A stretch of 64,000 nt of DNA from Selaginella moellendorffii (Eukaryota > Plantae > Lycopodiophyta): contig NW_003314281.1 in NCBI RefSeq assembly GCF_000143415.4, positions 608,833 through 672,832 of the forward strand, in the 5' to 3' direction. The notes below the pieces were generated by a model. That model made no database searches and was not told the DNA's origin. It was given only the letters and a program-made list of their open reading frames with translations. How positions within the stretch are numbered: the first letter of the stretch is position 1; each line of letters begins with the position of its first letter. This document shows, in pieces, positions 5,935 through 52,472 of the stretch. The position numbers and the translations under genes are program-made.

Positions 5935-7427
5935 ATGGCCACGGCCGCAGCATCGTGGGTGGTCGAGCATTGCACCCAAGCAGCATTTGAGGACGAGCAC
6001 AAGACGAGAATTTGCAAAGTTCCTGATCCGAGCTGCAGCTGCTCCACCAGCCGAGAGGGCAGCCTTGACTCGGAGATTTGCTTCTCTTCACCACCGCCAC
6101 AACACCAGGATGTGGTCGGAGGGTCAAGCAACCATTTCCTGGATTTCGGGATCGATCATCACCAGCAGCATCATCCACACCTCATCAACCTTCTCTCGGA
6201 CCACGAGTGGATCAACTTCTTGAGATGGAGGTCGTGGCAAATCGAGAGCAGCAGCAGCAACAGCGCCGCCGCCATGCCAGTTGAATTTCCTCCCAGTGCC
6301 ACCGACTTTTCCCAGCTCGAGCTCTTCCCTTCGAATCTGGAACCAGGCCTCTCGCTCCCTCTCACGAGCTTCTCATCTCATCATAGTCACCAGTCGAGCA
6401 CGGTGCTCGAACAGTTCCCTCAATGCTTGGAGATTCCAAGTGCGGCTACACCACTCTCGTCGTGTCCCACTCTCTACGACGAGGCTGGTTACCAGGACCC
6501 TTTCCTCGCAGCCTTCTCCAGCTCCACACTACACCACGCCGTCGATCCGAACAGGAGAATCGACAATGTGGATACCAATCACGCGCTCGTGGCAAGCAAT
6601 CATCCCGGAATCATGACTCCTTGTTCCACGGATCAAGGAGACAAAGGAATAATCAGTGGCAAGAAAGCCAAGCCCAGCTCCAGCAGCACAAGTGTTTCCA
6701 ACGAGAGCGTCAACAGATCTTCCGTGGTGGACGGCCCCCGGAATCCGAGAAAGAGGAGAGCTCTGGAGGATCGTCAAGACGCGGCATCCAGCAAGCAGCA
6801 AAAGAAGATTGGATCGTCGTCTTCGTCGCCAGCGTGGGCGATTGATGCAGCGGTGGCGTTGGGCTCACAAGAGCCTATCATTCACATCAGCCACGGAGGA
6901 AGAACTACTCCCCACGATCATGAGCTCATCTTGCAGCAAATCGCCGCGGCGTCGAGTAGCAGCGGGAAAGCACCACGGGTTCCAGCGCTCAACACCAATT
7001 TCAAGCCTCGAGCCAGGCAGGGAAGCGCCAATGATCCCCAGAGCATCGCTGCTAGAGTAAGTTCACACACACACGCTCACACAAGCTTGATATCCAAGGC
7101 TTTTGCTGCGCAGCATCGCCGGGAGAGGATCAGTGACAGGCTCAAGATCTTGCAAGAGCTCGTTCCAAACAGCACAAAGGTGTGGATCTTCAAAAGATTT
7201 TTTAAGATTCTAAGAGTATCTTTTCGTTCTTCTCAGGTTGATCTAGTGACGATGCTGGAGAAGGCCATCAATTACGTCAAGTTCCTCCAGCTGCAAGTTA
7301 AGGTCGGTGCTAGTTGACTTTTTCTGGTCTACAATGCTTGACTCTTTTCCAGGTGCTTACGTCGGACGACTACTGGCCAAGTGGCGCCACGTGGCAGAAC
7401 AGCAGTAAGGCTGACACAGCCCTATAA
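5935..7427 (+). CDS. RSL1: Class I RSL (RHD6/RSL1-like) bHLH transcription factor; exons 5935-7056, 7114-7179, 7237-7302, 7353-7427
   Basis: Spliced product [77 protein letters not shown] matches the class I RSL bHLH plus RSL domain; three GT-AG introns. Confidence 0.9.
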
Positions 7428-7754
7428 CAACGTCTTTGGATGGTCCTCCTTCAAACGAAATAGTTTGTGGGGCATACCATTATCTTTCTTAGTTGAAATC
7501 CGAAGGATAAGAGAATTTTTCTCCATTAATCGATCCATGACTCACACTCTTTTTCATATTGTAAATCCTTAATGTTGTGCTTTGAAGAACGCAACATGGT
7601 ACCTAGTGGTAAATTTTACCATGTAATGATCCTCTGAATCAAAGGTTTTCCATCCTCCAGGACGAGCTCAATGGCATCCATGAAACATCATCTCGAGCAA
7701 TGTTCCGGCCGTCACGTGTCCTCTACCGGGAGAAAACAAAAAAAGAAACCTGTG

Positions 7755-9867
7755 CTACCGCATCGACTGCTGGAGCTGGATCACCTGCTGTAACTGGACA
7801 ACCTGTTGGCGTTGATCCGGCGGGAGAGAGTTGATCTGCTCCGGTGTTAGATTCATAACCTGTTGAAGGAGGTGCTGTTGCTCCACCTCCAGTGGAAGAG
7901 GCTGTGAGAAAAGAGAGATTTTGGTAAGTTTTTCTTGTAGGAGAAGAGAAAACATCGATCTTACCTGCGGTGGCCCTTGCATTTGCATCTGTCCGTAAAC
8001 TGGACCTCCTTCCATGCCAAACGGAGGCTGCTGGAAGTTCATGCCAGGGCCCCGTCCTTGCGCGGACCCCATGCCAATGTTCATGCTTGGATGCTGGAAA
8101 AACACAACACAAAAAACGTTTTTTCTTTCTGTTTTTGCCAGATTACGAAGAGAAACAAGTACCTGAAAAGAATGTTGTGGAGGGGGTTGAAGTGGTAAAG
8201 GCGGCTGGCCTTGAGACTGGAAAGGCATGCCCATGCTAAATTGAGGCTGATGCTGGAAACAGCAGACGAACGATCAATATTCCACCAAAAAAAAGAACAC
8301 GACTTTCTGGAGGAAGAACATTTACCCCGAATGGTGGACCTTGGAAGTTCATAGATTGAGCTGGAGCAATTGGTGGCATTGGAGGAGGTCTGGGCTGCTG
8401 CGGCAAAGGTGGCTGCTGAGGAATCCCACCCGGTTGCTGCGAGTACGCCGGAGGAATAAATGTGGACGGCGGAGCAGAGGCCGGAGGAAGCGGCGGCTGC
8501 CTCGACTGCGGCAGTCGGACCATTCCCAGCATTATTTGGGCCTGCAACACACAGCTGAATGTCAGCTCACGACTCGAAAGGTCTCAAAAAGGAAAGAAGG
8601 AAAGGGCCTCTTTAAACAAAACCTGGAAGAGAGCTTTTGTCAATGAAGGATGAGTTATTAGTAGCTGGCGAGCCTGCTGCTGGTCATGTTGAATGAGTTG
8701 CTATAACACAAAAGCCGCCAGGATTTTCACTTCGTCAAGCAATACTACGCGGAAACAGCGTACCTTTAATTGAACCATGGTCTCGTAAAGTTGCTGCTTG
8801 GACATGGTTGCGAGATGGCTGGTGAGAGCATCGTTCCCAGGGAGGTTACCACCGTTTTGACCACCTTGAGTGGCCATCAATGGGATCTGGGAGCCCAGTG
8901 CTCCAGCCATAACACCGGCAGCAGCAGCAGCGGCCGAGAATCCTATAGCATCACCTGCGCGAAACGAATCAGAACAAAAAAAAGACGCGTTTTTATTATC
9001 ATAAGATCTTTTACCAGGATTGTTTGCCGAGCCACCCCTTCCCTGTAAGCAAAAACATGGTTTTTAACTCAGAGAGACGAAGGGAAAAGTTCCTTACTTG
9101 GTCCCTGTTTCTATCGCCGCCGCCGCCGCCACCACCACCGCCACCGCCGCTGCCTTTCTCGTTCTCGGCGAAATCGACGCGGAGCTGGCGGCCGTTTAGA
9201 TCATAGCCGGAGAGGTTGCGTCGAGCGCTTAGCGCGGTCTCCTCGTCCCTAAACTCACAAAAGCCATAGCCCTTTGGCTTGCCAGTTTCCCTGTCGGTTA
9301 CCAATCTGGAGAGAAAAAAGAACTTCCAATCAGTTCCCAGCTCAAAGACGCGCAAAGTCATAGATCCTAAGCTTCACTAGAGAGCTGCAAGCTTTCTTCT
9401 TGGGCTCAATCAAAGAGAAGAAAGAAAAACACAAGTGTGGTCTTTGAATCCATAGGCAACACTGTACACACGCTCTAGATAAGACACTAGAGACACAAGG
9501 AACCAAGAGCGAAGGAAGAACGCGAAGGATGCGAAGAACAAGACACCGCAAGAATAGACCAATAAGTCATATTGAAACGAAGTAGTGTCGCGTATACAGC
9601 GGTAGGATCTCCAACAAAAAAGAGGATGAAAAACCACTGTGTGTAGTTCTGACGCACCGAAAGGAAACCACTGGGCCGACCTCCTCGCAGATTTGAATGA
9701 GCTGCTCCTCTGTCGCGTCGTAAGGGATATTGCCGACTGCCACACCACAAAAACCCCCAATCAGGGCGCTGCTCGCGGCGAAATGGGAGAATGGAGGAGT
9801 GAAAGAATCGACGGCCGCCGCGGGCGCACTACTCACCAAAGACGCACCGATGCTGCGAGCTACCCAT
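7755..9867 (-). CDS. CSTF64: Cleavage stimulation factor 64 kDa subunit (RRM, hinge, C-terminal domain), multi-exon
   Basis: [56 protein letters not shown]; hinge [17 protein letters not shown]; C-terminal [24 protein letters not shown]. Confidence 0.93.
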
Positions 9868-9977
9868 TGCTACGCAGGCAATCCAAGAGCATCGCTCCTC
9901 CCGCGATGGCGCTGCCGCTGCCGCTGGGCCGCCACAAACCCTAGAATCCCTGCCCTAGAAAATGGTTCTTCGTCAAA

Positions 9978-11603
9978 CTAACCGAGGTGGGTTTTAACTA
10001 ACGGAGCCGCCGGCGGTGGCGGTTGGTACGGTAAAGTCCGGGCGCCGGGGAAGTACGGAAGGTCGTCCAAGAACGCGTTGGAGACGAGGACGTAGGGCGA
10101 CGACTTGGCGGTGTTGAGCTCCAGCGCTGTTCTGGCGACAGTCCCGGATTTTTCTATGGTTCCTGGATTGCGGCTGCTCTTGCAAGCGCTCAGCAGTGCC
10201 ATCCATGGCACGGGCAATCGGGCAAAGGAGCTGCTGAGAACGATCCTCTCGGCCTGCTCGATCAGCCCAGCTCGCCCAAACAGATCCACGGTGCAAACGA
10301 GATGGTCTATGCCCCACACCAATCCGTAATCGTGGTGCATTGAGATGAAGAAACTCCAGCCTCGTTTCACATCGCCCGAGTGGCCGAGAGCGCTTAGAAG
10401 GGCCAGGAAGGTCACCTCGTTTGGAAGGACTCCATCCATGGCCATCTTGTGGAAGCTTGTCACAGCGGACGAGAGATCTCCGGCCTGGACGTGAGCTGCG
10501 ACGAGAGAGCTCCACGAGACAACGGTCCGGGATTGCATCCGATGGAGAGTTTTTTCCGCCTCAGCAGAGCAGCCGCAGCTCCCATACATGTGGATGATCG
10601 AGTTTCCAACTTCGAGGTGGTGTTGCGAGTGATCTTCCGCTCCGGGGGCCTCGAGCAAGAAAGAGTGAACGAGTCGGCCTTGCCTAAGAGCGGAGATTCG
10701 AGCGCAAGCATCGAAAACACTGATGAAAGTGCACGCGTTTGGATGGATTCCTTGTTGGTCCATCATGGCAAGCATGATCAAAGCACCAGCTCCGGCGGAT
10801 TCGCTCTGTGCGTAGCCACCGATCATCGTGTTCCAAGTCACGGTGTTTCGATCGAGATCCATGGCGTCAAACGTATTCTTGGCTTCCTGGAGACGACCGT
10901 TTCGAGCGTACGCTGAAATCATGCTGTTCCACGAGATCACATCCCGGTGGCTCTTGCAAATGGAGGCAAAAGTCTTCCTCGCCTCGGAAACTCTCGAGTG
11001 TTTCCCGTACATGTTGATGAGCGCGTTCATCACTCCAACGCTTGCCTCCCCCTCGCAGCTTAGAACAACAGCGTGGACGAACCGGCCGTGAGAAATCTCC
11101 TCCATTGAAGTGCAAGCCTCGATCGCTGCCATGAAAGTCACACTGTTGGGCCTTACACCTTCCAGATTCATCGTCCAAAACAGTACCAACGATTCTATCG
11201 GTCGTCCAGACCGAGAAAACGCTCCAATGAGCGAATTCCACGACACTGTGCTCTTCTGAGGCATTTCCTCAAAGACCATCCTCGCTTCCCGCAGATGCCC
11301 TGCACGGGCATACCCCGCAATCATCAAGTTTCCCGAGAAAACATTCTTCCTGGCAATCGCATCAAACACGGAGCATGCATCGCGGATCCTTCCGCACTCG
11401 GTATACATATGGAGGAGAAGATTTGCAAGAAAGGTGTCGCTTTCAAGCCCCGCTCGCTGGAGTGACGAATGGATGAGCTTACCCAGGCGGAGAGATCGCG
11501 AGGAGCAGCATTGGCGGAGGAGAGATGAGTATAGCGGCGATGCGTCTTGTATACCGCACCTCTCAGCCCATCGCAGCGCGATCATAGCCTCCTTTTCATC
11601 CAT
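9978..11603 (-). CDS. PLS-class PPR protein with E domain
   Basis: Intronless; ATG at 11603 (MDEKEAM..); P/L/S repeats and an E-like tail (HLVCTVDLFGRAGLIEQAE..W.ALLSAC..SSPYVLVSN). Confidence 0.9.
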   Translation of the reverse strand: MDEKEAMIALRWAERCGIQDASPLYSSLLRQCCSSRSLRLGKLIHSSLQRAGLESDTFLANLLLHMYTECGRIRDACSVFDAIARKNVFSGNLMIAGYARAGHLREARMVFEEMPQKSTVSWNSLIGAFSRSGRPIESLVLFWTMNLEGVRPNSVTFMAAIEACTSMEEISHGRFVHAVVLSCEGEASVGVMNALINMYGKHSRVSEARKTFASICKSHRDVISWNSMISAYARNGRLQEAKNTFDAMDLDRNTVTWNTMIGGYAQSESAGAGALIMLAMMDQQGIHPNACTFISVFDACARISALRQGRLVHSFLLEAPGAEDHSQHHLEVGNSIIHMYGSCGCSAEAEKTLHRMQSRTVVSWSSLVAAHVQAGDLSSAVTSFHKMAMDGVLPNEVTFLALLSALGHSGDVKRGWSFFISMHHDYGLVWGIDHLVCTVDLFGRAGLIEQAERIVLSSSFARLPVPWMALLSACKSSRNPGTIEKSGTVARTALELNTAKSSPYVLVSNAFLDDLPYFPGARTLPYQPPPPAAPLVKTHLG

Positions 11604-11635
11604 ATTGGACAGATCAAAAAGATAAAAAAAGCGTA

Positions 11636-11702
11636 TGGGGATGCCAGGAATTGAACCCGGGATTCTTTTTGTCACACTAGAGAAGATTACCACTACATCC
11701 CC
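11636..11702 (-). pseudogene. tRNA-like element (degenerate tRNA or tRNA-derived SINE head) lacking a normal D and anticodon arm
   Basis: Minus strand GGGGATG...CATCCCCA perfect 7-bp acceptor stem, T-arm CCGGG-TTCAATT-CCTGG (B box), TAGTGGTA A-box remnant, T6 terminator 5 nt downstream, CAA and AT-rich tract upstream. Confidence 0.65.
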
Positions 11703-13131
11703 TTTGAACAACGATAATTAAATGTTAATAATATTGTGTAATATAATAAATATCCTTCCCTGAGAGTTACTGGATAAAACCTCACATGGGTGGTGAAAGT
11801 CCATGATAGTAGCACACACAACAACATGCTAATCGTTTTCAATAAAATGTAAGAGGTATTTACAAAGTCATAAGTGTTGCTATTGTTAAAAGCATGTAGC
11901 TCTTCAGTGGAGTATTTGCTACCATCTCTATATCCCCCTTCATCACCGCCACCTTGCCATCTGCATGTCCCTCAAAATGCCCTTTGTGGTCCATGTGACT
12001 TCAAATAGTTGTTGTTGTTGCATTGAATGAGGGTTTGCAAGTTGCAAAATTTATTATTTATTATAATATATAATCTGTAATCAAGCTAGTCATAGAGAAA
12101 ACCTGAAAAAAAATTGGAATAAACAATCACAAAGGGAAATATTGTTTAGCAATTCACCTTGAATCACCCTTGTATCCTCCTCACAGCTTGTTCAACGTCT
12201 CCAGCAAGCTCTCGTTAGCTCAGAGGGCAGCGGCATGCCAGAACCTCTTCCCTCCCCATCTGACACATGCTCTTGAGCTTGACTTCCATGTAACGAAATA
12301 TGTCCAAAACACCATCACCCCTTGCAATGTCCTCGATCTGCCCATTCCAATCCAGAGGTGTAAGCGCCTGGATCACACCATCCTTCCATCCCTATTACCT
12401 TTCTAATAATGACGGTGCGATGGCTCAGATGGATCAGACAACCGACGGTGACGATTAACTACTCACCGTTTCAAACATGCATGAATCGGTCCTGGCCAGG
12501 AAAGAAAAACTCTGGAGAAAGTACAACATTTGTTGTAGCCGTGCACCATTAATCGTGGTACACCGGGCATAAGTGTAGTTGCAAGTGTAGACGAGGATCG
12601 GCCTTGAAGCCATTCTAGGAGTGGTACAAGTCAACATCTGTCAAAGACGATCTTAGTGTTTTGTTGTTGCACCTCTGCATTGTGACACTGGTGAATGAGC
12701 TCTTTCCCCAAGAACTTTGACCAGTTTCCCTGGTTTTTTCAGGGACATGGAATAAACACAACCCCTAAATGAGAACTTCTCTTTGAAAGATTGCCGCACA
12801 AATAGCCCACTAATTACTCTCTTGCCATTGTCATAATCTATGTTGATATCTTGTCATCACATATTTGTTTTGTGATCTTAAAGCAGCTCTGACAGCCAAA
12901 CCTGGGAGAAATTTAGTACTACCAGAAGACACCATTCATGATTCTTCACAAAGAGAGTTTAAATCTTTTTTTTATATACTCAATTTACTAAAACATTAAT
13001 AATAAAGAATTGAAAGAGAATGTTTAGTCAACGATTAAAGAATATCCTAGAATATATATAGAATTTTTAAGAATTTTCATTTGGCGTAGAAAAAGATCTC
13101 TTTAAGCTTTGTTTTTCCGTTGCGAAAGAAA

Positions 13132-14380
13132 ATGCCGGTGGAGAGGAGGACGAGCATCGGGTCTTGTTCATCCACGGGATCGAATGCCCTGGCTGTTCGG
13201 CGAGATCGGCGCAGGAGGCAGCCAAGCTGGATGAAGTTCTTTGGGCCGGAGCACCTCCAAGAACGCGATTGCTGGTTCGCTGTGCACAAGATCAACAGCG
13301 GCGGGCTGGATTCGCTGGCTGTTCACAACGCCGTTTCCAAGGCCTGCTTCAAGATACCCCTGTGTGGCTCTTTAGGTCGTCTCGGTGGAAGTGGAAGCGA
13401 TCACACCTTCACCAGTGCCAACAGTGGCCTTGTTTGTACCTTCAGAGGACAGAGGTACTTGAACAATTGTCTTTCTGTGATATTATTGTGTAGTTCTCGT
13501 CCACTCTGTTCCTTCTCACGGATGATTTCTTCAGGTTTAGTCTGATGCACGTCTTCAATCCTTTCAAATCGGAGGAGTTCCAAGTGACTATCCCACCCAA
13601 GACCGTCATCTACACCGCAGCTATTGTTCCCAAGGCAAGCAGCTCAAAAGAGTTCAGGGTGGTAGCAATGGCCGAATTCGGTGAAGTCACAGGTGTTTAT
13701 ATATACGAAAGCGGGACAAAGGTGTGGAGGAGGTCCTGGGAGTTGGAGTCGCTGCAGTACCTTGAGTTTTATCCGTGCAATGTCACGGTTGGCAACAGGT
13801 TCTGCTTCTTGGTGAAGAGTGGCAGAGACGGGTATCTGAGGGTCATGTTCTACGACATGGAAGGTGAAGCCTTGACAGATTCACAGCCTGGGTTTCCTGC
13901 GTCGTTTGGTCAGGTTGGTGTGGAAGAGTACGCGGAAAGCATTCGCATTGTGGAGCCCAATCTGTTCCTGTGCAAAGGCAAGCTGACTGTGGTGGATACC
14001 GTTGTGACTGGCTCACCGTCTTCTGGTCGCGACGAGGATGAAGATGAAGAATACTACCCGATTACTCGGAAGTGACTATATGGCAAATGGATGAACAGAC
14101 TCACAAGTGGGAGACAGTTGCAAAGATGCCAGATGATTTATGGCGCAAGCTTCACGTCGGCTGTGACATGTATTCCAAGCTCAAAGTTTGTGGAGCCGGC
14201 AAGTTTGTCTTCATGCAGTTTGTGCACTGGACTCCGTGGGAACATCGTGCGGCCGATGAAGACGCTGTAATTTGCAACTTGGACACTTGGGAAGAACTCC
14301 CTCCAAAACCACCCACAATCATGTTCAGCCGGTGCCTGGATGTTCTTGTTCTGGATCCAGACCAGTCCTTTGCTCTTTGA
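13132..14380 (+). pseudogene. F-box/kelch-associated beta-propeller-like gene with a 1-nt frameshift
   Basis: SANSGLVC..HVFNPF..VYIYESGTKVW..IWQMDE...WETVAKMP pattern; intron ~13454-13534; frame break at ~14072 (CGG AAG TGA; one added G restores R-K-V-T-I-W). No clear F-box seen. Confidence 0.6.
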
Positions 14381-15460
14381 GTTACGTTAACGCTATAGTT
14401 TCCTTTTTATGGGGTATGCACAGTAGGAGAAGTGGGAGGCAAAATCTGAATTCGATGAGGTTTAATCCATCGATCTGCTAGGCACAATCACTGTACACAT
14501 GCGACTCCGAGATTCATGCACAGTGACAGGTGCTTGCGGTTGCTGAATCGGCCTACTAGAAAGCCATGCACAGGCAATCGTGATTGAAATCGCATACGTA
14601 TGTAGACAGGAAAAGGCAGTGGTATCATATAAGATTTAGTTGGGGTTTTTCTGTTTTTCTCGGTTATAGTGGGGGATATTCGGCTTGGAGGGGGTGCGCC
14701 TTGGTTCTAGGAGAGAGGGGACCGTTTTCTAAGCTGTGGGAGTGAAGGGAGCGGAATAAAGAGTGTAGATGCTTCGACTAACAGCCTTGGAGCGCGTGGA
14801 GCAGAGGTTGGCGGTGCAGCTGTGTTTACAAACATTCAAAGAGTGCATTCGACAAGGATCTCTCGAGACCAGCAGATTTGTGTTCATTGTCAACTTGTGG
14901 ACAGCCTTGGGTGAGGTTTCTGGCAGAAGGCTACGGACGAGCAGTACCTCTTGCTGCAAGGAGCAACATCTTTTGGTGTACTGCCCAGGCCTCCCTTGCA
15001 TGGTATCACACTATTGCCGAGTTTCTAGCTGCGGGTGGTGAGGAAATGGCTCCTCTACCAATCTTGAGATTGCGGAAAGACTGTATAAGGAAGGGCGTGA
15101 TGGGGTGGAACAAATATTGGTGGCCAACTCTTCAACAGGATGAAGTTTATACAGAGCTCTGATCCATGCTAGTGTATTAGGTGTCCTACTTAGTGAGATG
15201 CAATGCCCTTGCATCCTATAATTCCAACTCTACCTTTTGAGATGTGGGGAATTGATTTTATATGGGACTATTTCAACCAACATGACATAGGAGGAACCAC
15301 TATATCCTGGTATACATGGATTATGTGACTGGAATCTTCCAGTCATATTAGATTTGTCTAACATCAATGCAAGGAGTGGTATAATTGTCATTTATGGGCT
15401 AAGAGTTTTCAGACAAAAGATTTCATACTGCTATATAAAGTAAATATTAGAAGTTGGCCA

Positions 15461-15890
15461 GCAAACTCAAAATTTGTTGGATTGGCCCATACCATGTGAA
15501 GACCAAGACCATGAACACCAATGGTTTGGTGGAGCTTGAGGGTTTCAGTGGTAATCCTCTTTGAACACCAGTGAATGGAGTTTAACTTTAGTATTATCAC
15601 ATTAGATTTGGAGAGGAGTGCTTTAAGGACATTGCACAGTCGTCGCCAGGGTGATGTCAAGGGCCAAGGTCAGCTCAAAAATAAGACTTAGTCCAAGTTG
15701 GGGGCTTTCCTTGAGCTGGCTCTAGCCCCACTTGGCAACGAATGTGTGATGCCTTTAGAGCACTCCTTTCCAAATCAAATGTAAGTTTCCATTCACAAAG
15801 AGGATTACTATTAAAATCCTTAAGCTCCACTGAACCACTAGTGTTCAAAATCTTAAAATAATATGGGCTAATTTAATGAATTTTTGTTGC
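15461..15890. mobile_element. MITE-like long inverted repeat / foldback
   Basis: Left arm (TGAACACCAATGGTTTGGTGGAGCTT..GTAATCCTCTTTG..GATTTGGAGAGGAGTGC) is the reverse complement of the right arm (GCACTCCTTTCCAAATC..CAAAGAGGATTAC..AAGCTCCAC..GTGTTCA); mismatches are mostly transitions; no coding capacity. Confidence 0.75.
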
Positions 15891-16267
15891 AAATGGTATG
15901 TTGGTAAATCCTCTTGAATATTCTTTCTTTATTATCATAATGGCAAGAGCTTGGTATTGTTAAACCGAGCTTAGAAAGTTTCAAAACAGCGTGGAGTGGT
16001 GACCACAATTTCAGAAAGGAGATCTTCTATGAAAGGAAGCTTTATTTTTCATGTTGATTAATGTTTTTTTTTCCTATTTAGAGTTCTGTTAGTGAATTAC
16101 AATTGTGTAAGTGAAGTTGCTGCGAGTTCAGATCTCCTATGAAGTAAGCTTCTTCTTTTTTGGTTCTTTTTTAGAGTTTACGTGAGCAAGTTGCTGAAAC
16201 TGAATTTGTATTTTATTCTTGACAGCATGACACATTCGAGGTTCTTTTTTTTTTGGAAAAGGTGAAG

Positions 16268-20330: not shown

Positions 20331-21559
20331 AGCTAGTTGAGAAATTAATTATCATATATGTGCACTTAAATCAAAAGGGCATTAAAGAAGAAATGTGGTT
20401 CCAAATGTATAATAAGGATAGGTATATTAGACATGGCTATCCAACTTGAGGCATAATCTAGCTTTTGCTTGCATGCCTATTTTTGTTCTATATTTATCTT
20501 GGGTCTAAACTTAAACTTTATATTGGTGGAGTATTTATATCCTCATGTTAGTATGTTAAAATAGTGTTAAACTTTATTTGGCTCTATTTTGTGTGTTAGT
20601 CCTAGCATTGGGATGCTCAATACTCTAAGATTATTCTAAGTCATTCCATGCCTTTATCACTTTGCTCTATAGACATGAGTTATTCCATGCTTTGTTTGTT
20701 TCACTTCCAAGTTCTATACTTCGGAATTTAACTCATCCTTTCATTTAATGGCTCAAGGCCTTGAAACTTAAATTTCATTTTGTTGCCTTTTGACACATGG
20801 CATGTGACATATGGCATATGGCACATAGAGGGTTAAAATTATGTTCCATGGTTATCTTATAATAAAGCACCACAAGATAAAAGGTAAAAATCACATATAT
20901 TACAATTTTGAGTTTGCCAATTTGCTCTCATATATTAGCAGAAGATCTCTTATATGAAAACTTAAGCTTGTGGCTGGATCACAAGGAAGAGGCCATGGAA
21001 GAGGCATTCCACGCAGAGGACCACTGCAATGATGGAATTGGGACAAGTCTAGTGCTACACCCATTTAGTGGTAAATATTTTACTTCTTTTGTTTTTGCTT
21101 GAGATTTCATCACCTTGCCAATGCAGCCACTGGTGAACAGCATGGTGATGGTTGGGTATGCTCCAAAAATGCACTATCACACTCCAAACTCCAAGTCTCC
21201 AGAAAGTTGGGCAGCTTGTGCACCCAGGTTCACTAGGATAATTCTGGATTGATTCATGAGTGAATAAGATTATCACTCATAGGCTTTTGAATCAAGAGGT
21301 CTCTGGTCAACCTTTGTCAATGCTTGACCAGAAAACTCTCTACATCATGTATTGTGTACATATGGTTTTCTTTTACCTTGAGCTACTTTACAGTGTAGTT
21401 TTTCTGTGCTCGATAAGCTTGACATTACAATCTATACTCTGTTCTTGAAGTATTCTAGCATTTATCAATGGAAGAATTTGAATTGATAAGTGCAAACATT
21501 TCTGAATGCTAGTAGTCATTATATTCCCACTTCAACATAATATGCCATGAATAAGGCCT

Positions 21560-22030
21560 GAAGACCAAACTTCCACACCTTGGAAATCTATCCAGTTACA
21601 GAGCCTCGACTCAGCTTGCAAGTGGACATCCATAGCAGCTTCCTCCACGTCAGTCCCCTCCTCTTTAGCTGCAAGAGAAATACGCTTTGAGCGCTCCCAC
21701 AAATGCCAAAGAGTTTGGACCGCAGACCTTTGCTGCTTGTATTTCCGCTACTAATTCCAAAGCCGGATCACCCTCGCTGTTTCCTGCATCATACTGTGAG
21801 CACTGCGAGTGAATATTGGCCATTCCCTTCTCTATCCGTGGATTTCCTTCTTTTCTTCGTCGGCTGAAGGTGGTGCGAGCTTTCAGAGCAGGAGCAAAGT
21901 CGAGGCATTTCACTGATCCATTCGAACATCTCCAAAGCCAGCTCTGCTTTGAAACGTGTTCTCGACATATCGCAGCTCCAGGACACAAGGCTGTCAAAGC
22001 ACATCCTGTCGAAAGTCCACTTTGCTAGGT
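21560..22030 (-). pseudogene. PPR pseudogene fragment
   Basis: Frameshifted PPR words: AKWTFDRM..SLVSW..AELALEMFE; GDPALEL..PNSLAFVGALKA. Confidence 0.6.
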
Positions 22031-22130
22031 ATGTAAGTGTGGAAGTTCCGAAGGATGATTATCTCCAAATCGTTTTTAACTAAACAGGAAGTCTAGATTC
22101 TACATACCGCGGAAGACCAAGTGGATCTCG

Positions 22131-22979
22131 TCAAGCTCGTTTCTTAATGCTCCTCCGAGCTCTCAGGACCTTGTCTCGCATTTTCTTGAGCTCCTTTGCG
22201 CTTGGAGAGTAGAGATCCAAGGTTGTAGAATCTGCAAAGTACGAGATAAAGCCAAGAAGAAAAAGAAAAGCAACAAAGAGTTCGCGTTTTACCGTCGGAT
22301 CGTTGCTCCTCCTCTCTTGCTGCTTTCCTCCTGCTGATCTCCACACTCCATGCGCTCTTATCTCTCGGATCCTTGCATTGGCTAACAGTTTCTTCGTCCG
22401 ACTCCAAGAGCGCTTGCTTGAGTTCCTCTCGGAGTGCCGTTTTAACATCCCCGGACAGCTTTGCGGGCACAGCTTGGATCTGATCGAGCACTCGTTTGAT
22501 GGTGCCTTCCTCCTCCTTCAGCTTCCATTCACAAGAAAAGCAAAAAAACATTAGAACTGGAATAGAAAGAAAGAACTCACCATGAATGAAACCTTGCGAT
22601 TTTGGTCGTCCAGAGAGTTCCGCATGGAACTGATGCTCTCCGCAACCCCGGCCACGAGATTTTCCAGAGCAGCCAACCGCTGCTCGATCGCATCGTCCGA
22701 TCGAATTGGGACTGGCAAAGGGACCAAATCCGTGGCCGTGACCTGCGATTCTCGCCTGGATTGCGAGAAGCCCTGGGAAGAGAAGGACTCCTGCTGGCTC
22801 TGCGACGGCTGCGATGCGTAGCAATGCGGCGGCGGCGGCGGCAGCGGCCGGGAGCGCGAGAAATCCAGCCGCCTGTGATCGCCGCCGCGAGGGATCTGGC
22901 GCTCAAACCTGTCGTATGATGCGCAGAGGGACGCGAGCTCGCCGGCGCTCGGCTTGTTCATCCCAAACCTCCTCATCAC
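22131..22979 (-). CDS. PRD3/PAIR1-like meiotic coiled-coil protein (candidate); 3 exons
   Basis: N-terminal MNK..ELASL, ASQPSQSQQESFSSQG (SQ-rich), central coiled coil, basic C-terminal VLRARRSIKKR. This order matches recalled PAIR1/PRD3 layout; splicing keeps the frame. Confidence 0.55.
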
Positions 22980-23037
22980 AGGACTAGCTAGGGTTTTGTG
23001 CCACGGCGGGAAATTTAAATTTCCAACGAGCTCTATC

Positions 23038-24779
23038 TCAGTGCATTAGAACTTCCTCGTAAAACTTTGTCAATTCCTTTCCTTGCAAGCCATTCCAAAA
23101 ATCGCGAGCCTTCATCACTTTCCTTCCTGGTGGCTGGACCTCCAAAATCTGGAAGAACGAAGAATCACACAAGCGAAACAAAGAGAGGAAAGATCGAGCG
23201 CTACCTCCAGCCAAGAGTGGTCACCGCATTCCACAAGCATCGATCCAGCCTTGAGTAGAATGGAGCGAGTCGATGGAAATCCTGACTGGCAAACTCTGGT
23301 TGTCACGATCTTCATCTCCAGGATCTCGCGATCGTTGCTGCTCGAGAGATGGAACTTTGCCTTTGTCCCAGGCCATTCGGAAAAAGCTCGCACCTGGAAA
23401 AATCAATGCAGTGTCTGGATATATTTCTTCCTAAGGCTTTTGGGTACCTTGTTGTGGATTATAGCCGCAGGCTCCTCAAATGAAAGCCACGCTTCCTCTA
23501 CACCAATCTAAAGAAAAAGGAAGAGTTGATGGAATAGCAAAAGAATTTGACAAACCAACCTTGGGAGCGTGAGTAGCGCGAGAGTGATCTTGCTCCGTAG
23601 CCCGACTTCGTCCCGTTCCATCCAGTAGATGTGGCATCTCTCTCAGCAGCAAACACGTCCCTAGCGCAGAGCAAAAGAAGAAATAAGAACTCTTGTCCTT
23701 GTGCAAAGAAACTCAAGAAAACTTCGTACATTTTCACAAAGCTCTACCTTTAGAGAAGAGAAGATCTTGTAGCTCAGGTGCCTGCGAGAAAGAAAGAGAG
23801 AAGCAATCTAGAAAAAGAATATGAAAACCTTGCGTGCAAACTTTACCTTAATGTTTTCGTCCACTTCAACGCTTTCAGAGGCTACAACAGGGCCAGAGTC
23901 GAGAGCTCGGACTGTGTAAGCGACACTCACGCCAGTAACCTTCACTCCATCCTACGAAAAGAAGAAAATACTTAGTACTCAAGAGACAGCTTAATCCACG
24001 AAGAGCTCCTCACCTGAATGGCTCGCTGCACTGGAGCGGCACCTCGATACAGCGGCAGCAAGCTCGGATGAACATTAACAGTACCTTGGAAAGGAGAAAA
24101 ACAAAAGAAAGAAGAACTAAGTTGGACACAGATGAAAAGTTTAAGAGATATCATGCAAACCATGCTTTGGAATGTCAAGGAACTTCTGAGAGAGAATGTT
24201 GCCGTAAGCCGCAGTCACGCAGAGGTCCGGCTCCAAACTCTTAAGTTCTTCCAGAAAACATCGCTACAAAAGCCCAGAAGTCATTCGTTTTCATGCCATT
24301 TTCAAGCTCTCACCTCACTGGCTTTCTCTGGCGAAAAGATCAAGTGTGGAGGGAATTGCCGGTCGAGAGCTCTTTGGGCGACTAGAGATGGCATTTGCTT
24401 CTTGCCTCGACCTCTAGCTGCTGGCGGCTGCGTGACGATCCCAGCAATCTGGATCGATCATCTATAAGTAACACAAACTTTTCTCTAGAGTTTTCTCTAG
24501 CAATGCATGCAAATTCTAAGCTACGCACCTCGAATTTGGAGTCTTTAGCCGCTGCGGCGTCTAGCAAAGAATCGAGAACCTTTGCAGCGGGCTGGAAAGG
24601 GCAATATTAATTTGAAAGAGGAAAGAAACGAACAAAGAATCGCTACACACCTCCGGTGTTCCAAGAAAAACAAGGCGAGATTTGCGCCCACATTCCTGGT
24701 GAAGAGATCGCACGACCAGATCGTGGCGCTTGAGAGCTTGAGGAGATTGCGCTAGAAGCCATGGCCGCAAGCCAAGCAT
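23038..24779 (-). CDS. FMT: Methionyl-tRNA formyltransferase, organellar, multi-exon
   Basis: LVFLGTPE, VTQPPAARGRG, PDLCVTAAYGNIL, GTVNVHPSLLPLYRGAAPVQRAI, GVSVAYTVRALDSGP, last exon ILEVQPPGRKVMKARDFWNG; transit-peptide-like N-terminus. Confidence 0.93.
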
Positions 24780-24973
24780 GCTTCCCAAAAACCTAAATTT
24801 CTCTTTTGTGACCTAGTCTCCTTTGATTGACCAATTGACCGTTGAAACTTTGGTACCGACGTGGCTTAGTCTGGATCGCACACGTGGAAATGACCAGTAA
24901 CTGAAAGACTCGATGCCACACGTTCTTCGTCTTCTCTCTTGGGTTTCTTTTTCTTTCCTTCTTCGCAGAAGAA

Positions 24974-25815
24974 ATGCCCACTGCACGATCTTCCTCCCAT
25001 GGCGCCGTCCAATTGGCAATGCCCAATGTGGTGGACATCTCGCCCTTCCGGAGCTTCCACTCGGCGGCGCAGCAATCCATTCCCTCCATCCCCGGGGGAA
25101 ATTCGCGATCGCTGGGCCACAATCCAGGGCCCAATTGCTTCGCCCCACAGGTGCTCCAGGCTGGAGATCCACTGCTGAGCAAGCGCGCCGTGGAGGTCGC
25201 CCTGGATGCCATTGGGAGCTGCGCGATCGAGAAAGTGATCAATGATTTGGTCGCGGCGATGAGGAATTTGGGAGCGTCGGCCCTGTCAGCTCCTCAAATC
25301 GGTCAAGCCCTCCAGGTAACGAAAATTCCGCGTTTTGGGGCAAATTGGGATCACTACTATCGTGTTCGTCTAGATCATTGTTCTTGAGGATCCAACCATC
25401 CAACAGCCTTCCAAGCTCATGGTTCGTGAAAAACTCCTCTCTCCTTCTCTCGCTCGCATTAAAGTCCCATCTTCTTGAGTCCTCGCAGGTGATTATAAAT
25501 CCAAAGCTCGTAGTGATCCATCCGGAAGAAACCGAGACGTCGCTGGAAGAGTGTCCAAGGTGAGTGAAACAACAAACTCAGAGAAGAAGAAAAAAAAACT
25601 ATTTTTCTTGTCCTCTTTGCAGCGTCTGTGGCTACTGTGCTCTCGTCGAAAGATTCTCGAGAGTGAAAGCTACCGGATTGAACAGGAGGGGCGAGAAGAT
25701 CCAGATTGACGCCAAAGGCTGGCTGGCTCGAGCACTTCAGCACGAAAGCGATCACTTGGAAGGCATTCTCTTCGTCGATAAGATGGTACCAAAATCCTTC
25801 CGGAGTATCTCGTAA
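24974..25815 (+). CDS. PDF1A: Peptide deformylase, PDF1A-like, with divergent motifs 1 and 2; exons 24974-25315, 25374-25421, 25489-25559, 25623-25815
   Basis: VLQAGDPLL..A.EV..IGS..IEKVI.DL..MR; APQIG..LQIIVLED; VIINPKL; GWLARALQHESDHLEG..VDKMVP.SFR. Start codon uncertain. Confidence 0.88.
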
Positions 25816-25945
25816 AGAGAGCGCATGACACATTCCTGTAAATTGATTTGTAAATACTGTGTGATATGATTGTGTGAAATAAAGCAAAGCTCGTCAATAC
25901 CTGACCATTGCGAAGGTCTTATTTTTCGGGGATCTTCTTCGTTCC

Positions 25946-27462
25946 TCAAGCGACGTTCTCTTCTCTGACTGGAGCGTCGAGGCCACAGATCTGACGGACT
26001 TTGGAGATGATTTTGGCGGCCAGCTGGGGTTTGTAGCCAGTTCCACACGCAGCCAGGTGCTTGGGAGCTAGTGCACGATCGAAGTAGAATTCGCCCGACT
26101 TTAGTTTGCTGTTTGGCTGGAGCGACAGCCACACTATTGTGTCAGCGCCTTGGTCGATAGTCCTGAGCTTGCCTTGGAATCTGCGGGATGGAGTCAGCTA
26201 AAGTTCGTCTCTTGATCGAGGAGCTTACTTCTCTCTAAATGACGAGAGGCTCTTTGCAACCCCTTCTGTGTCGACCCAGCCAGGATGCATCGTATAAAAG
26301 CCGACACCTTTGGATCCATACAACTTTGCCCAGTTTTCGGTCATTGCAATCTGAAAATCACGAAAGTAGTTTAGGCTTCCCAGAAAAACTCATGACTACC
26401 TGGAGTCTCTTGTTACGCGAATACTGGACAAGACCATTGAACTTGTCGTCTGAATACTGGGAAAGAACAACACACAAAGCCGATCAAGGGTCATAAAAAA
26501 GCGATAGGCTGAGCTGAATACCTGTAAATCTTCGGTGAGTGAACTTCCATACATGCCTCCAGACGATACAGTGACTACTCGCGACTCCGGAGCTGCTTTC
26601 TCAAGCGCAGGCATGAGAAGTTCCGTGAGAGTATACGAAGCAGCTATATTCACTGCAAAGTTCAACTCCAACCTGTAACAACAGTAGCAAGAATCGTCAT
26701 CTACTCCAGCAACTAAAAGACCGAAGAAGAATCACTCACCCGTCTACTGTAGTCTTGCGTTCGTGTTCCATCAGCCCCGCATTGTTCACCTGTAAAGCCA
26801 AAGTCACAACATTGTTTCTCACACAAAAAAATCGCGTGTACCAAAACATAGAGCGGCCTGTCCATGCTGAGAAATCTCGTGGCCAGCTCCTTGACTTCTT
26901 TCAGAGAAGATAAATCACAAAGCTGGAGAGACAAGGAAATTGTTCTCCTTCATCGTAAAACAAAGAAAGAAACAACTCACCTCCAGCTCAACTTTGTCAT
27001 TCCCAGTCTTTGACTTGATCTCCGAGACAGCTTTCTCGCCTTTCTCTTTGTTGCGACACACTAGAAAGACGTTCGCACCCCTGAAACACAAAAGAGAAAG
27101 AGTTCCTCGTTTCCTTGCTAGTAAGAGATCCAACGAATGCTTCAAACCTGGCAGCTAGAGCTTCCGCTGATGCAAATCCAATTCCTGTATTGGCCCCGGT
27201 GACCACACAGTTCTTCCCAGCCATATCCACATCCAAGTCCTCTTTCTTAAAACCGGCAGCATGCTTCCTGCAAGAAATCACGATCAATCACGGTGGAACA
27301 CACCGAAGTATCACACAGGGAACTCACAGGAAGGCCGACCGAGTGAAGTGGAGCGTGCCATAGAGCGAGAATGCGAGCGTTCTGTAGGCCTGGAATCACA
27401 GATACATCAGAAAAATCGATTGCGCAGCGCCGGTGGAGCTAGCTTACCTCGACGATCCACAT
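25946..27462 (-). CDS. Short-chain dehydrogenase/reductase, DHRS12-like, multi-exon
   Basis: GKNCVVTGANTGIG, LCDLSSL, VNNAG, RVVTVSSGGMY, YSRNKR, MHPGWVDT, SGEFYFDRA motifs. Confidence 0.88.
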
Positions 27463-28454: not shown

Positions 28455-31400
28455 TCAGCAGTAGTACATGTAGTCCCGGACTTCAGGAAGTACCTCAGGC
28501 AGCCTATACTCCGCGGCCGCAGCGCGAGCAGAAGAAGATCCAGCTCCAGCGGCAACACTGTCGACGTGGAGCCGAGACCGGTAGGCCACCAGGTGAGCGT
28601 AGTACGCCGGAGGTATCACCGAGACCGCCTTGGTACACCGGGCATAAGTGTAGCATAAGCTGTTGACGAGCGTCTGGAGCTGGTCGGCCGTGAAGCCATT
28701 CTGGTCGAGCAGGACGTGGTAGTGCGTCGGCCGGCTGGTTCCCTGGAGACCCCTGTGGCTGCAAAGGTAAAAGTCGAACTCTCGAGGATGGGTGATCTCC
28801 GTGTCCACAACGGTCCCCGGTCTCACGTTGTTGCTCACCACGTTACTGTCCGCCGGGAAGAACCTCGTGTGGTGACGCTTCTGGACGACCACGAAAGTTA
28901 TCTGGGGACAGTAGTCGCCATTCGGCTGGAGGGTAAGGAACGCCCTCCGGATTGCCTGCACTTCGTTGTTCAGGACGTCGGAGAACTGGCCCTCGCTCAC
29001 ACCATCCCGGAAGAAGAGAAGCCTCTCCGGTTTGAGTCTGGTGTGAGTGAAAAACGCCCTCATGAGGTCGACCACCATGTCATGCAGGTGCTCGATCATC
29101 TCCACCCTGCCCCTCTGAGATCTCGCGCGAGCGAGATACTTGACCGCCGATGGCCAGTCCATGCTCGCCACCACCGCGGAGATGGAGGGACTCGTGTCGT
29201 CGCGAGCCATGGGATGAGAGACATCAGCTCCAAAGATGATTGTTGGATTGCCGAGAATCGATGGAACCATGAGTCGCAGATCCTGCGCCAGATCCATGTT
29301 CTGGCCTCCAACTTTGACGTTGATCTTCATCGCGAGGTTGGCCAGGTACTGTGACAAACTGTTGTACTCCTTCATCACATTTTTCTTAAGGCACACTTGC
29401 GTCACGAGCCCGAGCTCCGTCTCGCACAGCTTCTTCAGGTCCCCGTAAATCTGGTGCTTGGCGTCCATGAGACAAACTACCAGCTGAAGACCTTCCCCGG
29501 GCTTGCTTTTGCTGGCGTGATTCCTGACGGCATTCCGGAGTAGCGTATCATACTGCTCCAGCCGACCGCTGGAAGGAGGGATCACGGGAGGATCCATCTG
29601 AACTCCAACCGCCGCGCACCGCGTGATCAACTCACTGATGAAAGCATCCACGTCCTGTCTTGCTAATCTCGCGAAGTTGACGAGAGTCCAGCGGCGGATT
29701 ACTCCCCCTCGAAGAAACCTAGACCGCATCATGTTCCAGCCGCCATCAGATGGCGTGATCCGGTTGCTGCTATACCTCAGACTCGGAGTTGGAAGAACCC
29801 TTGCGTGCAGAGACGTCATCGACTTAGCCACCTGAATTCCAAACTCCGCAGCATAATCATTCCTGGAAGCAAAAAAGACAAGCGTGTCAAGAACAAGAGC
29901 GCAGAACTTCATATGAAAGAAAACTTACCGCTGAAAGTCTTGAACATTGCTCATAAGAGTCTTTATGTTCTGCTCTCGAACAGCAGGAATCTGACACGTG
30001 AACCTCAGCATGTTTGTTGTCTGCCTCTCGTTGAGCTTTCCCTGATATTTCTGACCGGCAGCCAGCTTGCACACTTCCATAGGCAGATAAGTAGTTTTCC
30101 TTCCTTGCAACTCGAGGCAAGGCAACTCGGGATACTGGATCTTATGCTTGTACGTCGTCCAAAAGTAGTCCACAACCTTCACCTCCTGTCCAGAATCAGT
30201 TGTGAACGTCAACGCCTTTGTTGGCCGCAAAGACAGTCCCGAAATCCTGTATCTCCGAGGGATGTTCCTGTGCGTGACTTCGACCTTGAGCCGGTTCAAG
30301 AGATTTTTGGCCTTGGCTCGATCACCGTCCGACAAGCCTCGGCTTGGGTCGAAGTACGGGAGTGACTTCTTGAGGAACTCGAGAACTGGCAATGCCTCGT
30401 AAAATGCTGCTGCAGACAAATCGACGTTCAGCACGAGGCCTTGCATGGTTGGACGAACACTCTGGTAAAATCCTTTCCAGGCCTCAAAACCACCTTCTAG
30501 TGCCAGCCTCCCGAATGACGGATCGAAGAAGTTACGTCCACTGGGAACGTACGACTTCATGGGCCACTCTCTCAAAGCCACGTCCAAAGCTTGCAAGAAC
30601 TCATACGGGGCTTGTAGGACCGCACCTCTGCCTTCGAGGAAGAGGTCCATTTGATACTGGTCCAGCTTCGCGGCAAACTTGATCGTGACTTTGAACTCGC
30701 GGGTCCTGCGCCCTTCTTCCTCTGCCGGCAACGTAACTTTGAAGTCCTTCTGCTCAAACGGAAGTGGCCCCGCCGTGTACAAGCTCTTGCTTCCATCGTA
30801 GACGGGAAGAAGGTTGTTTAGCTCTGAAGCCCGATACTGTGACACGAGCTGCCGCTCCAGAGCACGAGCAATCCCTTTCGAGCCAACAGCCGGATGAATG
30901 GATACGTCGTAGTGAAAGATGGGTCCATCTTTCACCTTCATCTTGAAGTGGTTCACTCTGATGGTAACCTTCTGTCCAACAGTTCCTCGATCAGGCCTTT
31001 TAGGAGGTGCAAGTGCTTTCGAGGAGGTAGGAACATCACCAGTGCTGCTGCTAGGAACGGGAGCACTCGGGCCAGCAGGAGTTTCCTTCACGTCCAAATC
31101 TTTTACTCGAGGAACCAGCGAGTCGGCACTAGCGCTCTGGCCTACAACAAAAGCAAACAAAAGATCACAACTTTGGCATGCCCGAGGGATGAAAATTTAC
31201 GTACCAGATCCTCCAGGGACAGAGCTCTCGATGGTTTGAGGCCTAGGACCAGTCGAAGAAGATGCTCCTCCTACAGCAAGAAATTCAAGGAGTAAAGCTC
31301 CAGAAGAACAAAGAAAGAGATGCGTACCATGTCCTGCCTGGGATCCAGCAGCGCTCTGGTTGTAAGCCACTCCTACAACAAAAGCAAACAAAAGATCACA

Positions 31401-52400: not shown

Positions 52401-52472
52401 GCCTCTATAGCTCAGTGGTAGAGCGTCAGTCTTGTAAACTGAAGGCCCAGAGTTCGATACTCTGTGGAGGCA
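52401..52472 (+). tRNA. trnT-UGU: tRNA-Thr(UGU)
   Basis: GCCTCTA/TGGAGGC acceptor stem, GCTC-AGTGGTA-GAGC D-arm, TCAGT-CTTGTAA-ACTGA anticodon arm, CAGAG-TTCGATA-CTCTG T-arm, T6 terminator at ~52493. Confidence 0.95.

Follow-up and report, generated by a model that had tools for sequence, protein, structure and literature searches.

Head-to-head methionyl-tRNA formyltransferase and peptide deformylase genes in Selaginella moellendorffii: a probable lineage-specific juxtaposition with an altered deformylase

In Selaginella moellendorffii, the nuclear genes encoding methionyl-tRNA formyltransferase (FMT) and a type-1A peptide deformylase (PDF) are located head to head within a 64-kb stretch of scaffold GL377585.1 (the whole stretch analysed here, hereafter the window), positions 14974-35815 of which are 100% identical to a 20.8-kb stretch of the assembly GCA_000143415.2. 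FMT formylates the organellar initiator Met-tRNA, and PDF takes the formyl group off. The head-to-head pair is confirmed. It probably (at a probability of about 0.62) represents two ordinary nuclear genes of organellar translation, which were juxtaposed in the Selaginella lineage within a dense stretch of genes and need not be kept together by selection for co-regulation. The deformylase of the pair departs from its plant relatives in two of the three conserved motifs.

Gene models of the pair

The positions and orientations claimed in the initial annotation, i.e. FMT on the minus strand with its ATG at 24779 and PDF on the plus strand with its ATG at about 24974, were confirmed by complete exon models, by domain matches and by the NCBI models on GL377585.1, in which the borders and lengths of both genes are identical to ours. 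The features of the pair are as follows.

23038..24779, minus strand: coding sequence of FMT (methionyl-tRNA formyltransferase), 11 exons, 366 amino acids (aa); ATG at 24779, stop codon at 23038-23040
24779-24651, 24591-24529, 24448-24314, 24263-24161, 24084-24014, 23951-23847, minus strand: FMT exons 1-6
23781-23748, 23660-23560, 23507-23448, 23393-23205, 23148-23038, minus strand: FMT exons 7-11
24974..25815, plus strand: coding sequence of type-1A PDF (peptide deformylase), 4 exons, 217 aa; ATG at 24974, stop codon at 25813-25815
24974-25315, 25374-25421, 25489-25559, 25623-25815, plus strand: PDF exons 1-4
24780..24973, no strand: inter-ATG gap of 194 bases, comprising both 5' untranslated regions and the promoter region

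All exon borders in both models are of the GT-AG type, and the reading frame continues unbroken through each of them. The database protein corresponding to PDF (P0001) is named 'peptide deformylase 1A, chloroplastic-like [Selaginella moellendorffii]'. Ahead of the conserved domain, the predicted products carry extensions of about 30 residues (FMT) and about 57 residues (PDF), which would fit organellar targeting. The gap, first described as about 195 bp long and holding ACGT-core and TTGACC motifs, was found to be 194 bases in length with the quoted motifs in place, and the description of both genes as intron-containing plant types in divergent, not tandem, orientation agreed with the exon models and with the RNA contigs described below.

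With ATGs 194 bases apart on opposite strands, the two genes fall within the definition of a bidirectional pair (opposite strands, starts at most 1000 bases apart; PMC2648788). Being on opposite strands and giving rise to separately spliced mRNAs, they do not form a def-fmt operon, which lies on one strand and is co-transcribed.

FMT is of the ordinary plant type

Both formyltransferase domains were recognised in the product of the minus-strand gene. In Pfam searches by exon, FMT exons 4, 5 and 6 matched Formyl_trans_N colinearly (model positions 72-102, 105-125 and 128-158, respectively), and exons 10 and 11 matched Formyl_trans_C (positions 23-76 and 79-99), weakly when taken exon by exon. 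In NCBIfam, exons 4 and 5 matched the equivalog fmt (TIGR00460) best, and the whole 366-aa NCBI model matches PF00551 and PF02911. Exon 5 reads VNVHPSLLPLYRGAAP, including the catalytic Asn-x-His and the SLLP element (VNVHPSLLP), the catalytic Asp is found in the LDSG of exon 6, and the tRNA-binding loop TQP...GRGKK, of the pattern TQPxxxxGRGxK, is in exon 3.

The domains, the NVH...D residues and the TQP...GRGKK loop are shared with plant FMT proteins of the Arabidopsis 'pigment defective 194' type, and plant representatives were 57-74% identical to Selaginella FMT exon 3 with no notable difference. On the basis of these features, the Selaginella FMT looks like an ordinary orthologue. In the alga Spirogloea muscicola, a protein of 701 aa (P0152) combines a complete two-domain FMT with a C-terminal cold-shock domain, which is a fusion or else a gene model in which two neighbours were merged.

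Unlinked orthologues in other plants

The arrangement of FMT and PDF1A genes was compared in three bryophytes, one angiosperm and two further plant contigs, a sample that leaves other lycophytes, ferns, hornworts, Physcomitrium and green algae outside. The synteny that had been put forward as a check on the pairing was absent throughout the sample. No FMT was present among the called genes within 10 kb on either side of the PDF1A loci of Marchantia polymorpha, Riccia sorocarpa and Sphagnum fallax, and the loci of Marchantia and Sphagnum returned no tblastn match of E <0.1 to the Selaginella FMT exon peptides. Within 10 kb on either side of the FMT locus of Arabidopsis halleri no PDF was found, and the gene has an arginyl-tRNA synthetase gene on one side there and a second formyltransferase gene on the other. 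The two further plant contigs, of 16 kb and 10.6 kb, each contain a whole FMT and no PDF-like sequence; in both of them six exon pieces of the Selaginella FMT align to matching blocks, with limits that differ by a few residues at most. Additionally, the gene lists of a 29-kb and a 15-kb contig from the Joint Genome Institute with FMT (P0126) include no deformylase family, and two 3.2-kb FMT contigs, one of them from an angiosperm, are too short to inform on linkage to PDF.

In the underlying searches, the best 120 matches to P0001 were from bryophytes and angiosperms. The search of representative sequences with FMT exon 3 gave 32 matches, and the 29 checked were angiosperms, one alga (gene model) and fragments of sequencing-run and metagenome assemblies, while a word search with a Prunus FMT returned only eudicots among the matches listed. 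A word search with the PDF open reading frame (ORF) matched only the Selaginella protein and a partial copy of it.

Because the two genes are unlinked in the sampled plants, the pairing is not ancestral to land plants, and judged by this comparison the adjacency is secondary. A conserved cluster was found in none of the sampled plants. The compact genome contains many head-to-head pairs with short gaps, and FMT-PDF, which the sampled plants lack, is one of these, a lineage-specific curiosity rather than a conserved module.

The partial copy is located on scaffold GL377606.1 and comprises PDF exon 1, intron 1, exon 2 and part of intron 2, with 87% DNA identity. At this locus (L005, 9660-10421), which is annotated as a 138-aa hypothetical protein, pieces resembling window positions 21396-21495, 21830-22031 and 24984-25473 are joined, and the start of PDF, the gap, FMT and the downstream neighbour of FMT are missing. 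The copy has the appearance of a patchwork fragment, perhaps a gene piece that was captured or rearranged; going by its content, the FMT-PDF pair was not copied as a unit.

Two other local arrangements were noted at the compared loci. In Marchantia and Riccia, a Complex1_LYR gene follows PDF1A tail to tail (L002 12908-14308 and L013 12771-13610, respectively), an arrangement conserved between these two liverworts and absent in Selaginella. In A. halleri (6212-16246), FMT lies directly downstream of the arginyl-tRNA synthetase gene, and the second formyltransferase gene, encoding a two-domain protein of 297 aa, is 2.5 kb downstream of FMT.

An altered type-1A deformylase

PDF exon 1 (positions 3-55 of the Pep_deformylase model PF01327, 28.7 bits) and exon 4 (positions 99-153, 61 bits) both score above the Pfam cut-off of 22.8, and the nearest solved structures are those of Arabidopsis PDF1A (E-value 1e-34) and human mitochondrial PDF (7e-26), as compared to 4e-13 for Arabidopsis PDF1B, so that 1A is the nearest type. 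P0001 was aligned with 13 plant PDF1A sequences, and motifs were counted in its best 120 matches, 118 of which had a readable motif II.

Motif I, i.e. G-hydrophobic-G-hydrophobic-A-A-x-Q (PMC12690207), reads ASALSAPQ in place of GVGLAAPQ and retains no more than its Leu, second Ala and Gln, whereas GVGLAA occurs in 113 of the best 120 plant PDF1A matches. Motif II reads EECPS in place of EGCLS, so that the Cys ligand is kept, Gly is changed to Glu, and Leu to Pro. EGCLS was found in 117 of the 118 readable matches, P0001 being the sole protein with EECPS; its codons cross the joint of exons 3 and 4, which the RNA contigs confirm. The HExxH of motif III is present as QHESDHLEG, with H194, E195 and H198 in invariant columns and HESDH instead of the usual HECDH. 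Altogether, the metal ligands Cys152, His194 and His198 are retained, as are the catalytic Glu195 and Gln108.

Apart from the motifs, PDF is without the 14 residues that follow the IIVLED strand and without a C-terminal tail (about 20 residues shorter than the 13 relatives), and its identity to other plant PDF1A proteins is as low as 38-52%. A maximum-likelihood tree built from 20 PDF1A proteins gave it an end branch of 4.16 changes per site, a 19-fold excess over the median of 0.22. In the predicted fold, most 10-residue blocks between residues 71 and 200 have a predicted local distance difference test score (pLDDT) of over 90, and the N-terminal 65 residues are disordered. The coding sequence differed among the RNA runs at two sites, both synonymous, as compared to three variants in about 190 intron bases, a pattern that gives a weak hint of constraint on PDF.

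An alternative, which we regard as a serious but less than even possibility, is that the deformylase beside FMT is a non-working, relaxed or re-purposed PDF1A copy, and that organellar deformylation is carried out by a putative PDF1B or another copy. The two neighbours would then not form a functional couple for adding and removing the formyl group. The EECPS and ASALSA motifs, the 14-residue deletion, the missing tail and the very long branch all agree with this possibility. In the E. coli enzyme, the residue after the metal-binding Cys provides a backbone NH to the formyl oxygen, and the proline found at this position in Selaginella has no such NH. The Arabidopsis pdf1a knock-out reportedly has little phenotype. 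Moreover, motif I and II substitutions make some bacterial type-3 PDFs weak or inactive, but trypanosome PDFs with altered motifs are still active (PMC12690207). A working enzyme is further favoured by the retained ligands, Glu195 and Gln108, by the confidently predicted catalytic domain, and by a frame that is intact, spliced and expressed; the two synonymous variants point the same way and are too few to weigh much.

The catalytic activity of the Selaginella PDF is hence uncertain owing to the altered motifs, which weakens the picture of a tuned pair of formyl-adding and formyl-removing enzymes. The protein offers a natural test case for the motif positions that deformylase activity truly needs, and as such is a more concrete lead than the pairing.

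Transcription across the gap

RNA contigs from four public runs, each of a different study, were placed on window positions 22000-27000; a contig does not equal a single transcript, and start sites, strand and expression level are not given by it. Nine of the 13 introns (six of FMT and all three of PDF) were removed in the contigs exactly at the modelled borders, which identifies the runs as RNA and both genes as expressed, as was the case in all four runs. Contigs of PDF start at 24894 and 24925. In run X2, a 954-base contig with spliced FMT exons is unbroken from 24651 to 25092, spanning the entire gap and 119 bases of the PDF coding sequence. Since every base of the gap is thereby present in RNA in that sample, the 5' ends of FMT and PDF probably abut or overlap, and there may be two interleaved promoters instead of one untranscribed shared promoter. 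Public capped small RNA sequencing and 5' global run-on sequencing data exist for S. moellendorffii (PMC11335568).

At the other end of FMT (window 22603-23148), contigs of runs X5 and X2 continue from the last FMT exon into the downstream gene, and the transcripts of these two genes seem to touch or overlap.

The following motifs were located in the gap.

24827-24840: TTGACCAATTGACC, two W-box-like cores flanking a CCAAT
24858-24865: GACGTGGC, site of the abscisic acid-responsive element (ABRE)-like/ACGT-core type
24881-24886: G-box CACGTG

Some degree of common control by way of the G-box, ABRE-like and W-box-like sites is plausible, as in many head-to-head pairs. CACGTG is not over-represented in the window (7 found against 8.7 expected). 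The variants of run X2 within the gap, at 24820 and 24893, fall outside all of the quoted motifs.

Neighbouring genes

Coding sequences are 62 bases apart between FMT and the gene downstream of it, 194 bases apart within the pair and 130 bases apart between PDF and a short-chain dehydrogenase gene, and with such neighbouring distances the short gap of the pair is not special. The downstream neighbour of FMT, beginning 62 bases from the FMT stop codon, encodes a 241-aa product without a Pfam family. Two more genes are of concern.

28455-31160, minus strand: Argonaute gene with ArgoN, PAZ, Mid and Piwi domains; no Pfam family is listed for it in the contig annotation
32426..36658, minus strand: gene for bacterial-type (organellar) initiation factor 2 (IF2), NCBI model of 1160 aa with IF2_N, GTP_EFTU and IF-2

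IF2 is the factor that selects and binds fMet-tRNA. Its assignment is also supported by pieces of the ORF matching TIGR00487 IF-2, GTP_EFTU and PF11987. IF2 is not part of the pair and has no promoter in common with it, and it was not near PDF1A or FMT in the other plant loci examined. The sole Rfam match in the window was a tRNA gene at 52401-52472 on the plus strand (72.7 bits).

Chance or selection

We infer that the adjacency arose by rearrangement and need not be maintained by any selection for co-regulation. A rearrangement in the Selaginella lineage would have put FMT head to head with a fast-evolving PDF1A-type deformylase in a very gene-dense stretch. The two genes are transcribed in opposite directions from a promoter region that can be no longer than 194 bases, and their 5' ends probably abut or overlap.

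Several points weigh against such a chance juxtaposition. The formyl group that FMT adds is the one that PDF removes, and in a genome of about 22,000 genes the chance of FMT having one of two to three PDF genes as its immediate neighbour is estimated at about 2-3 in 10,000. The gap holds two of the 20 ACGTGG and two of the 25 TTGACC sequences counted in the window, a local excess (P about 0.002-0.003 each by a Poisson estimate) in ordinary plant promoter elements that were chosen after being seen. IF2 is located three genes past PDF, beyond the dehydrogenase and Argonaute genes, bringing FMT, PDF and IF2 within 13.6 kb; this proximity is striking but was noticed afterwards, and we estimate the chance of any organellar translation gene within five genes at roughly one in ten. 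Finally, the juxtaposition is judged from a sample without other lycophytes or ferns, with conservation within the lineage lying outside it. On the other hand, if a whole genome is scanned for neighbours with any functional match, a few such pairs will turn up by chance, and head-to-head pairs are frequent in plants, with 2471 in Arabidopsis (PMC2648788).

Selection for a co-regulated module, in which FMT, PDF and perhaps IF2 were gathered under a short bidirectional promoter or in one chromatin domain as a re-invented def-fmt linkage that balances formylation, fMet initiation and deformylation in the organelles, is in our estimation unlikely. It would account for the functional complementarity of the two enzymes, for the divergent arrangement over 194 bases with its paired cis-motifs, for expression of both genes in each run, and for the closeness of IF2. 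It would also parallel bacteria, where def and fmt lie together in 58% of species and are even fused in Exiguobacterium (PMC12690207), and Arabidopsis, in which head-to-head pairs tend to co-expression and related function (PMC2648788). However, the pairing is absent in the three bryophytes, the angiosperm and the two further plant contigs, the degenerate motifs I and II and the very long PDF branch fit poorly with a tightly tuned enzyme pair, and IF2 is separated from the pair by two other genes and came into view only after the event. Were the linkage selected, the bacterial def-fmt logic of balancing formyl addition and removal could be re-created in a plant nucleus via a divergent promoter.

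A more elaborate version, to which we give only a slight chance, would make the locus a Selaginella nuclear cluster for the organellar fMet start cycle, consisting of FMT, IF2 and a re-modelled PDF with a changed role (tuned, regulatory or binding-only), and with FMT and PDF under one divergent promoter. If true, this cluster would provide a rare example, in a eukaryote, of translation-start genes brought back by selection into an operon-like linkage.

Descent of the adjacency from an endosymbiont def-fmt operon, moved to the nucleus as a block, is extremely improbable, as it has only the bacterial precedent in its favour and is contradicted by the divergent orientation, the plant-type introns of both nuclear genes, the six FMT exon pieces that match the same blocks in two further plant contigs, and the unlinked orthologues in all other sampled plants.

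The initial annotation had proposed a re-assembled functional pair under one bidirectional promoter rather than a transferred operon. Re-assembly as opposed to transfer is upheld by the divergent, intron-containing genes and their unlinked orthologues. That one bidirectional promoter drives a functional pair is so far a proposal, and a lineage-specific juxtaposition in a dense genome is at present the likelier reading in view of the lack of conservation in the sampled lineages, the ordinary spacing, the transcribed gap and the degenerate PDF motifs. In the literature, no paper was found describing the Selaginella FMT-PDF pair, nor one joining peptide deformylase, formyltransferase and bidirectional promoter; judging by title and abstract, papers naming both Selaginella and peptide deformylase do not seem to deal with it.

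Comparison with known systems

Arabidopsis PDF1A (1ZXZ, 4JE6) has the same fold and the same metal-binding and catalytic residues as the Selaginella PDF, and both carry an N-terminal extension, in Selaginella a putative targeting one, whereas EECPS, ASALSA and HESDH, together with the absence of the 14-residue stretch and of the C-terminal tail, are features of the Selaginella protein.

The same two enzyme activities stand side by side in the bacterial def-fmt arrangement, which forms an operon in E. coli (PMC12690207). The bacterial genes are tandem and co-transcribed, whereas those of Selaginella are nuclear, lie on opposite strands, have their own spliced mRNAs and encode N-terminal extensions; there is no evidence for common descent of the two arrangements. 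In structure, the Selaginella pair, with ATGs 194 bases apart, does not differ from plant bidirectional pairs with start sites less than 1 kb apart (PMC2648788); its RNA contigs suggest that the 5' ends may overlap, and the shared promoter is here a candidate only.

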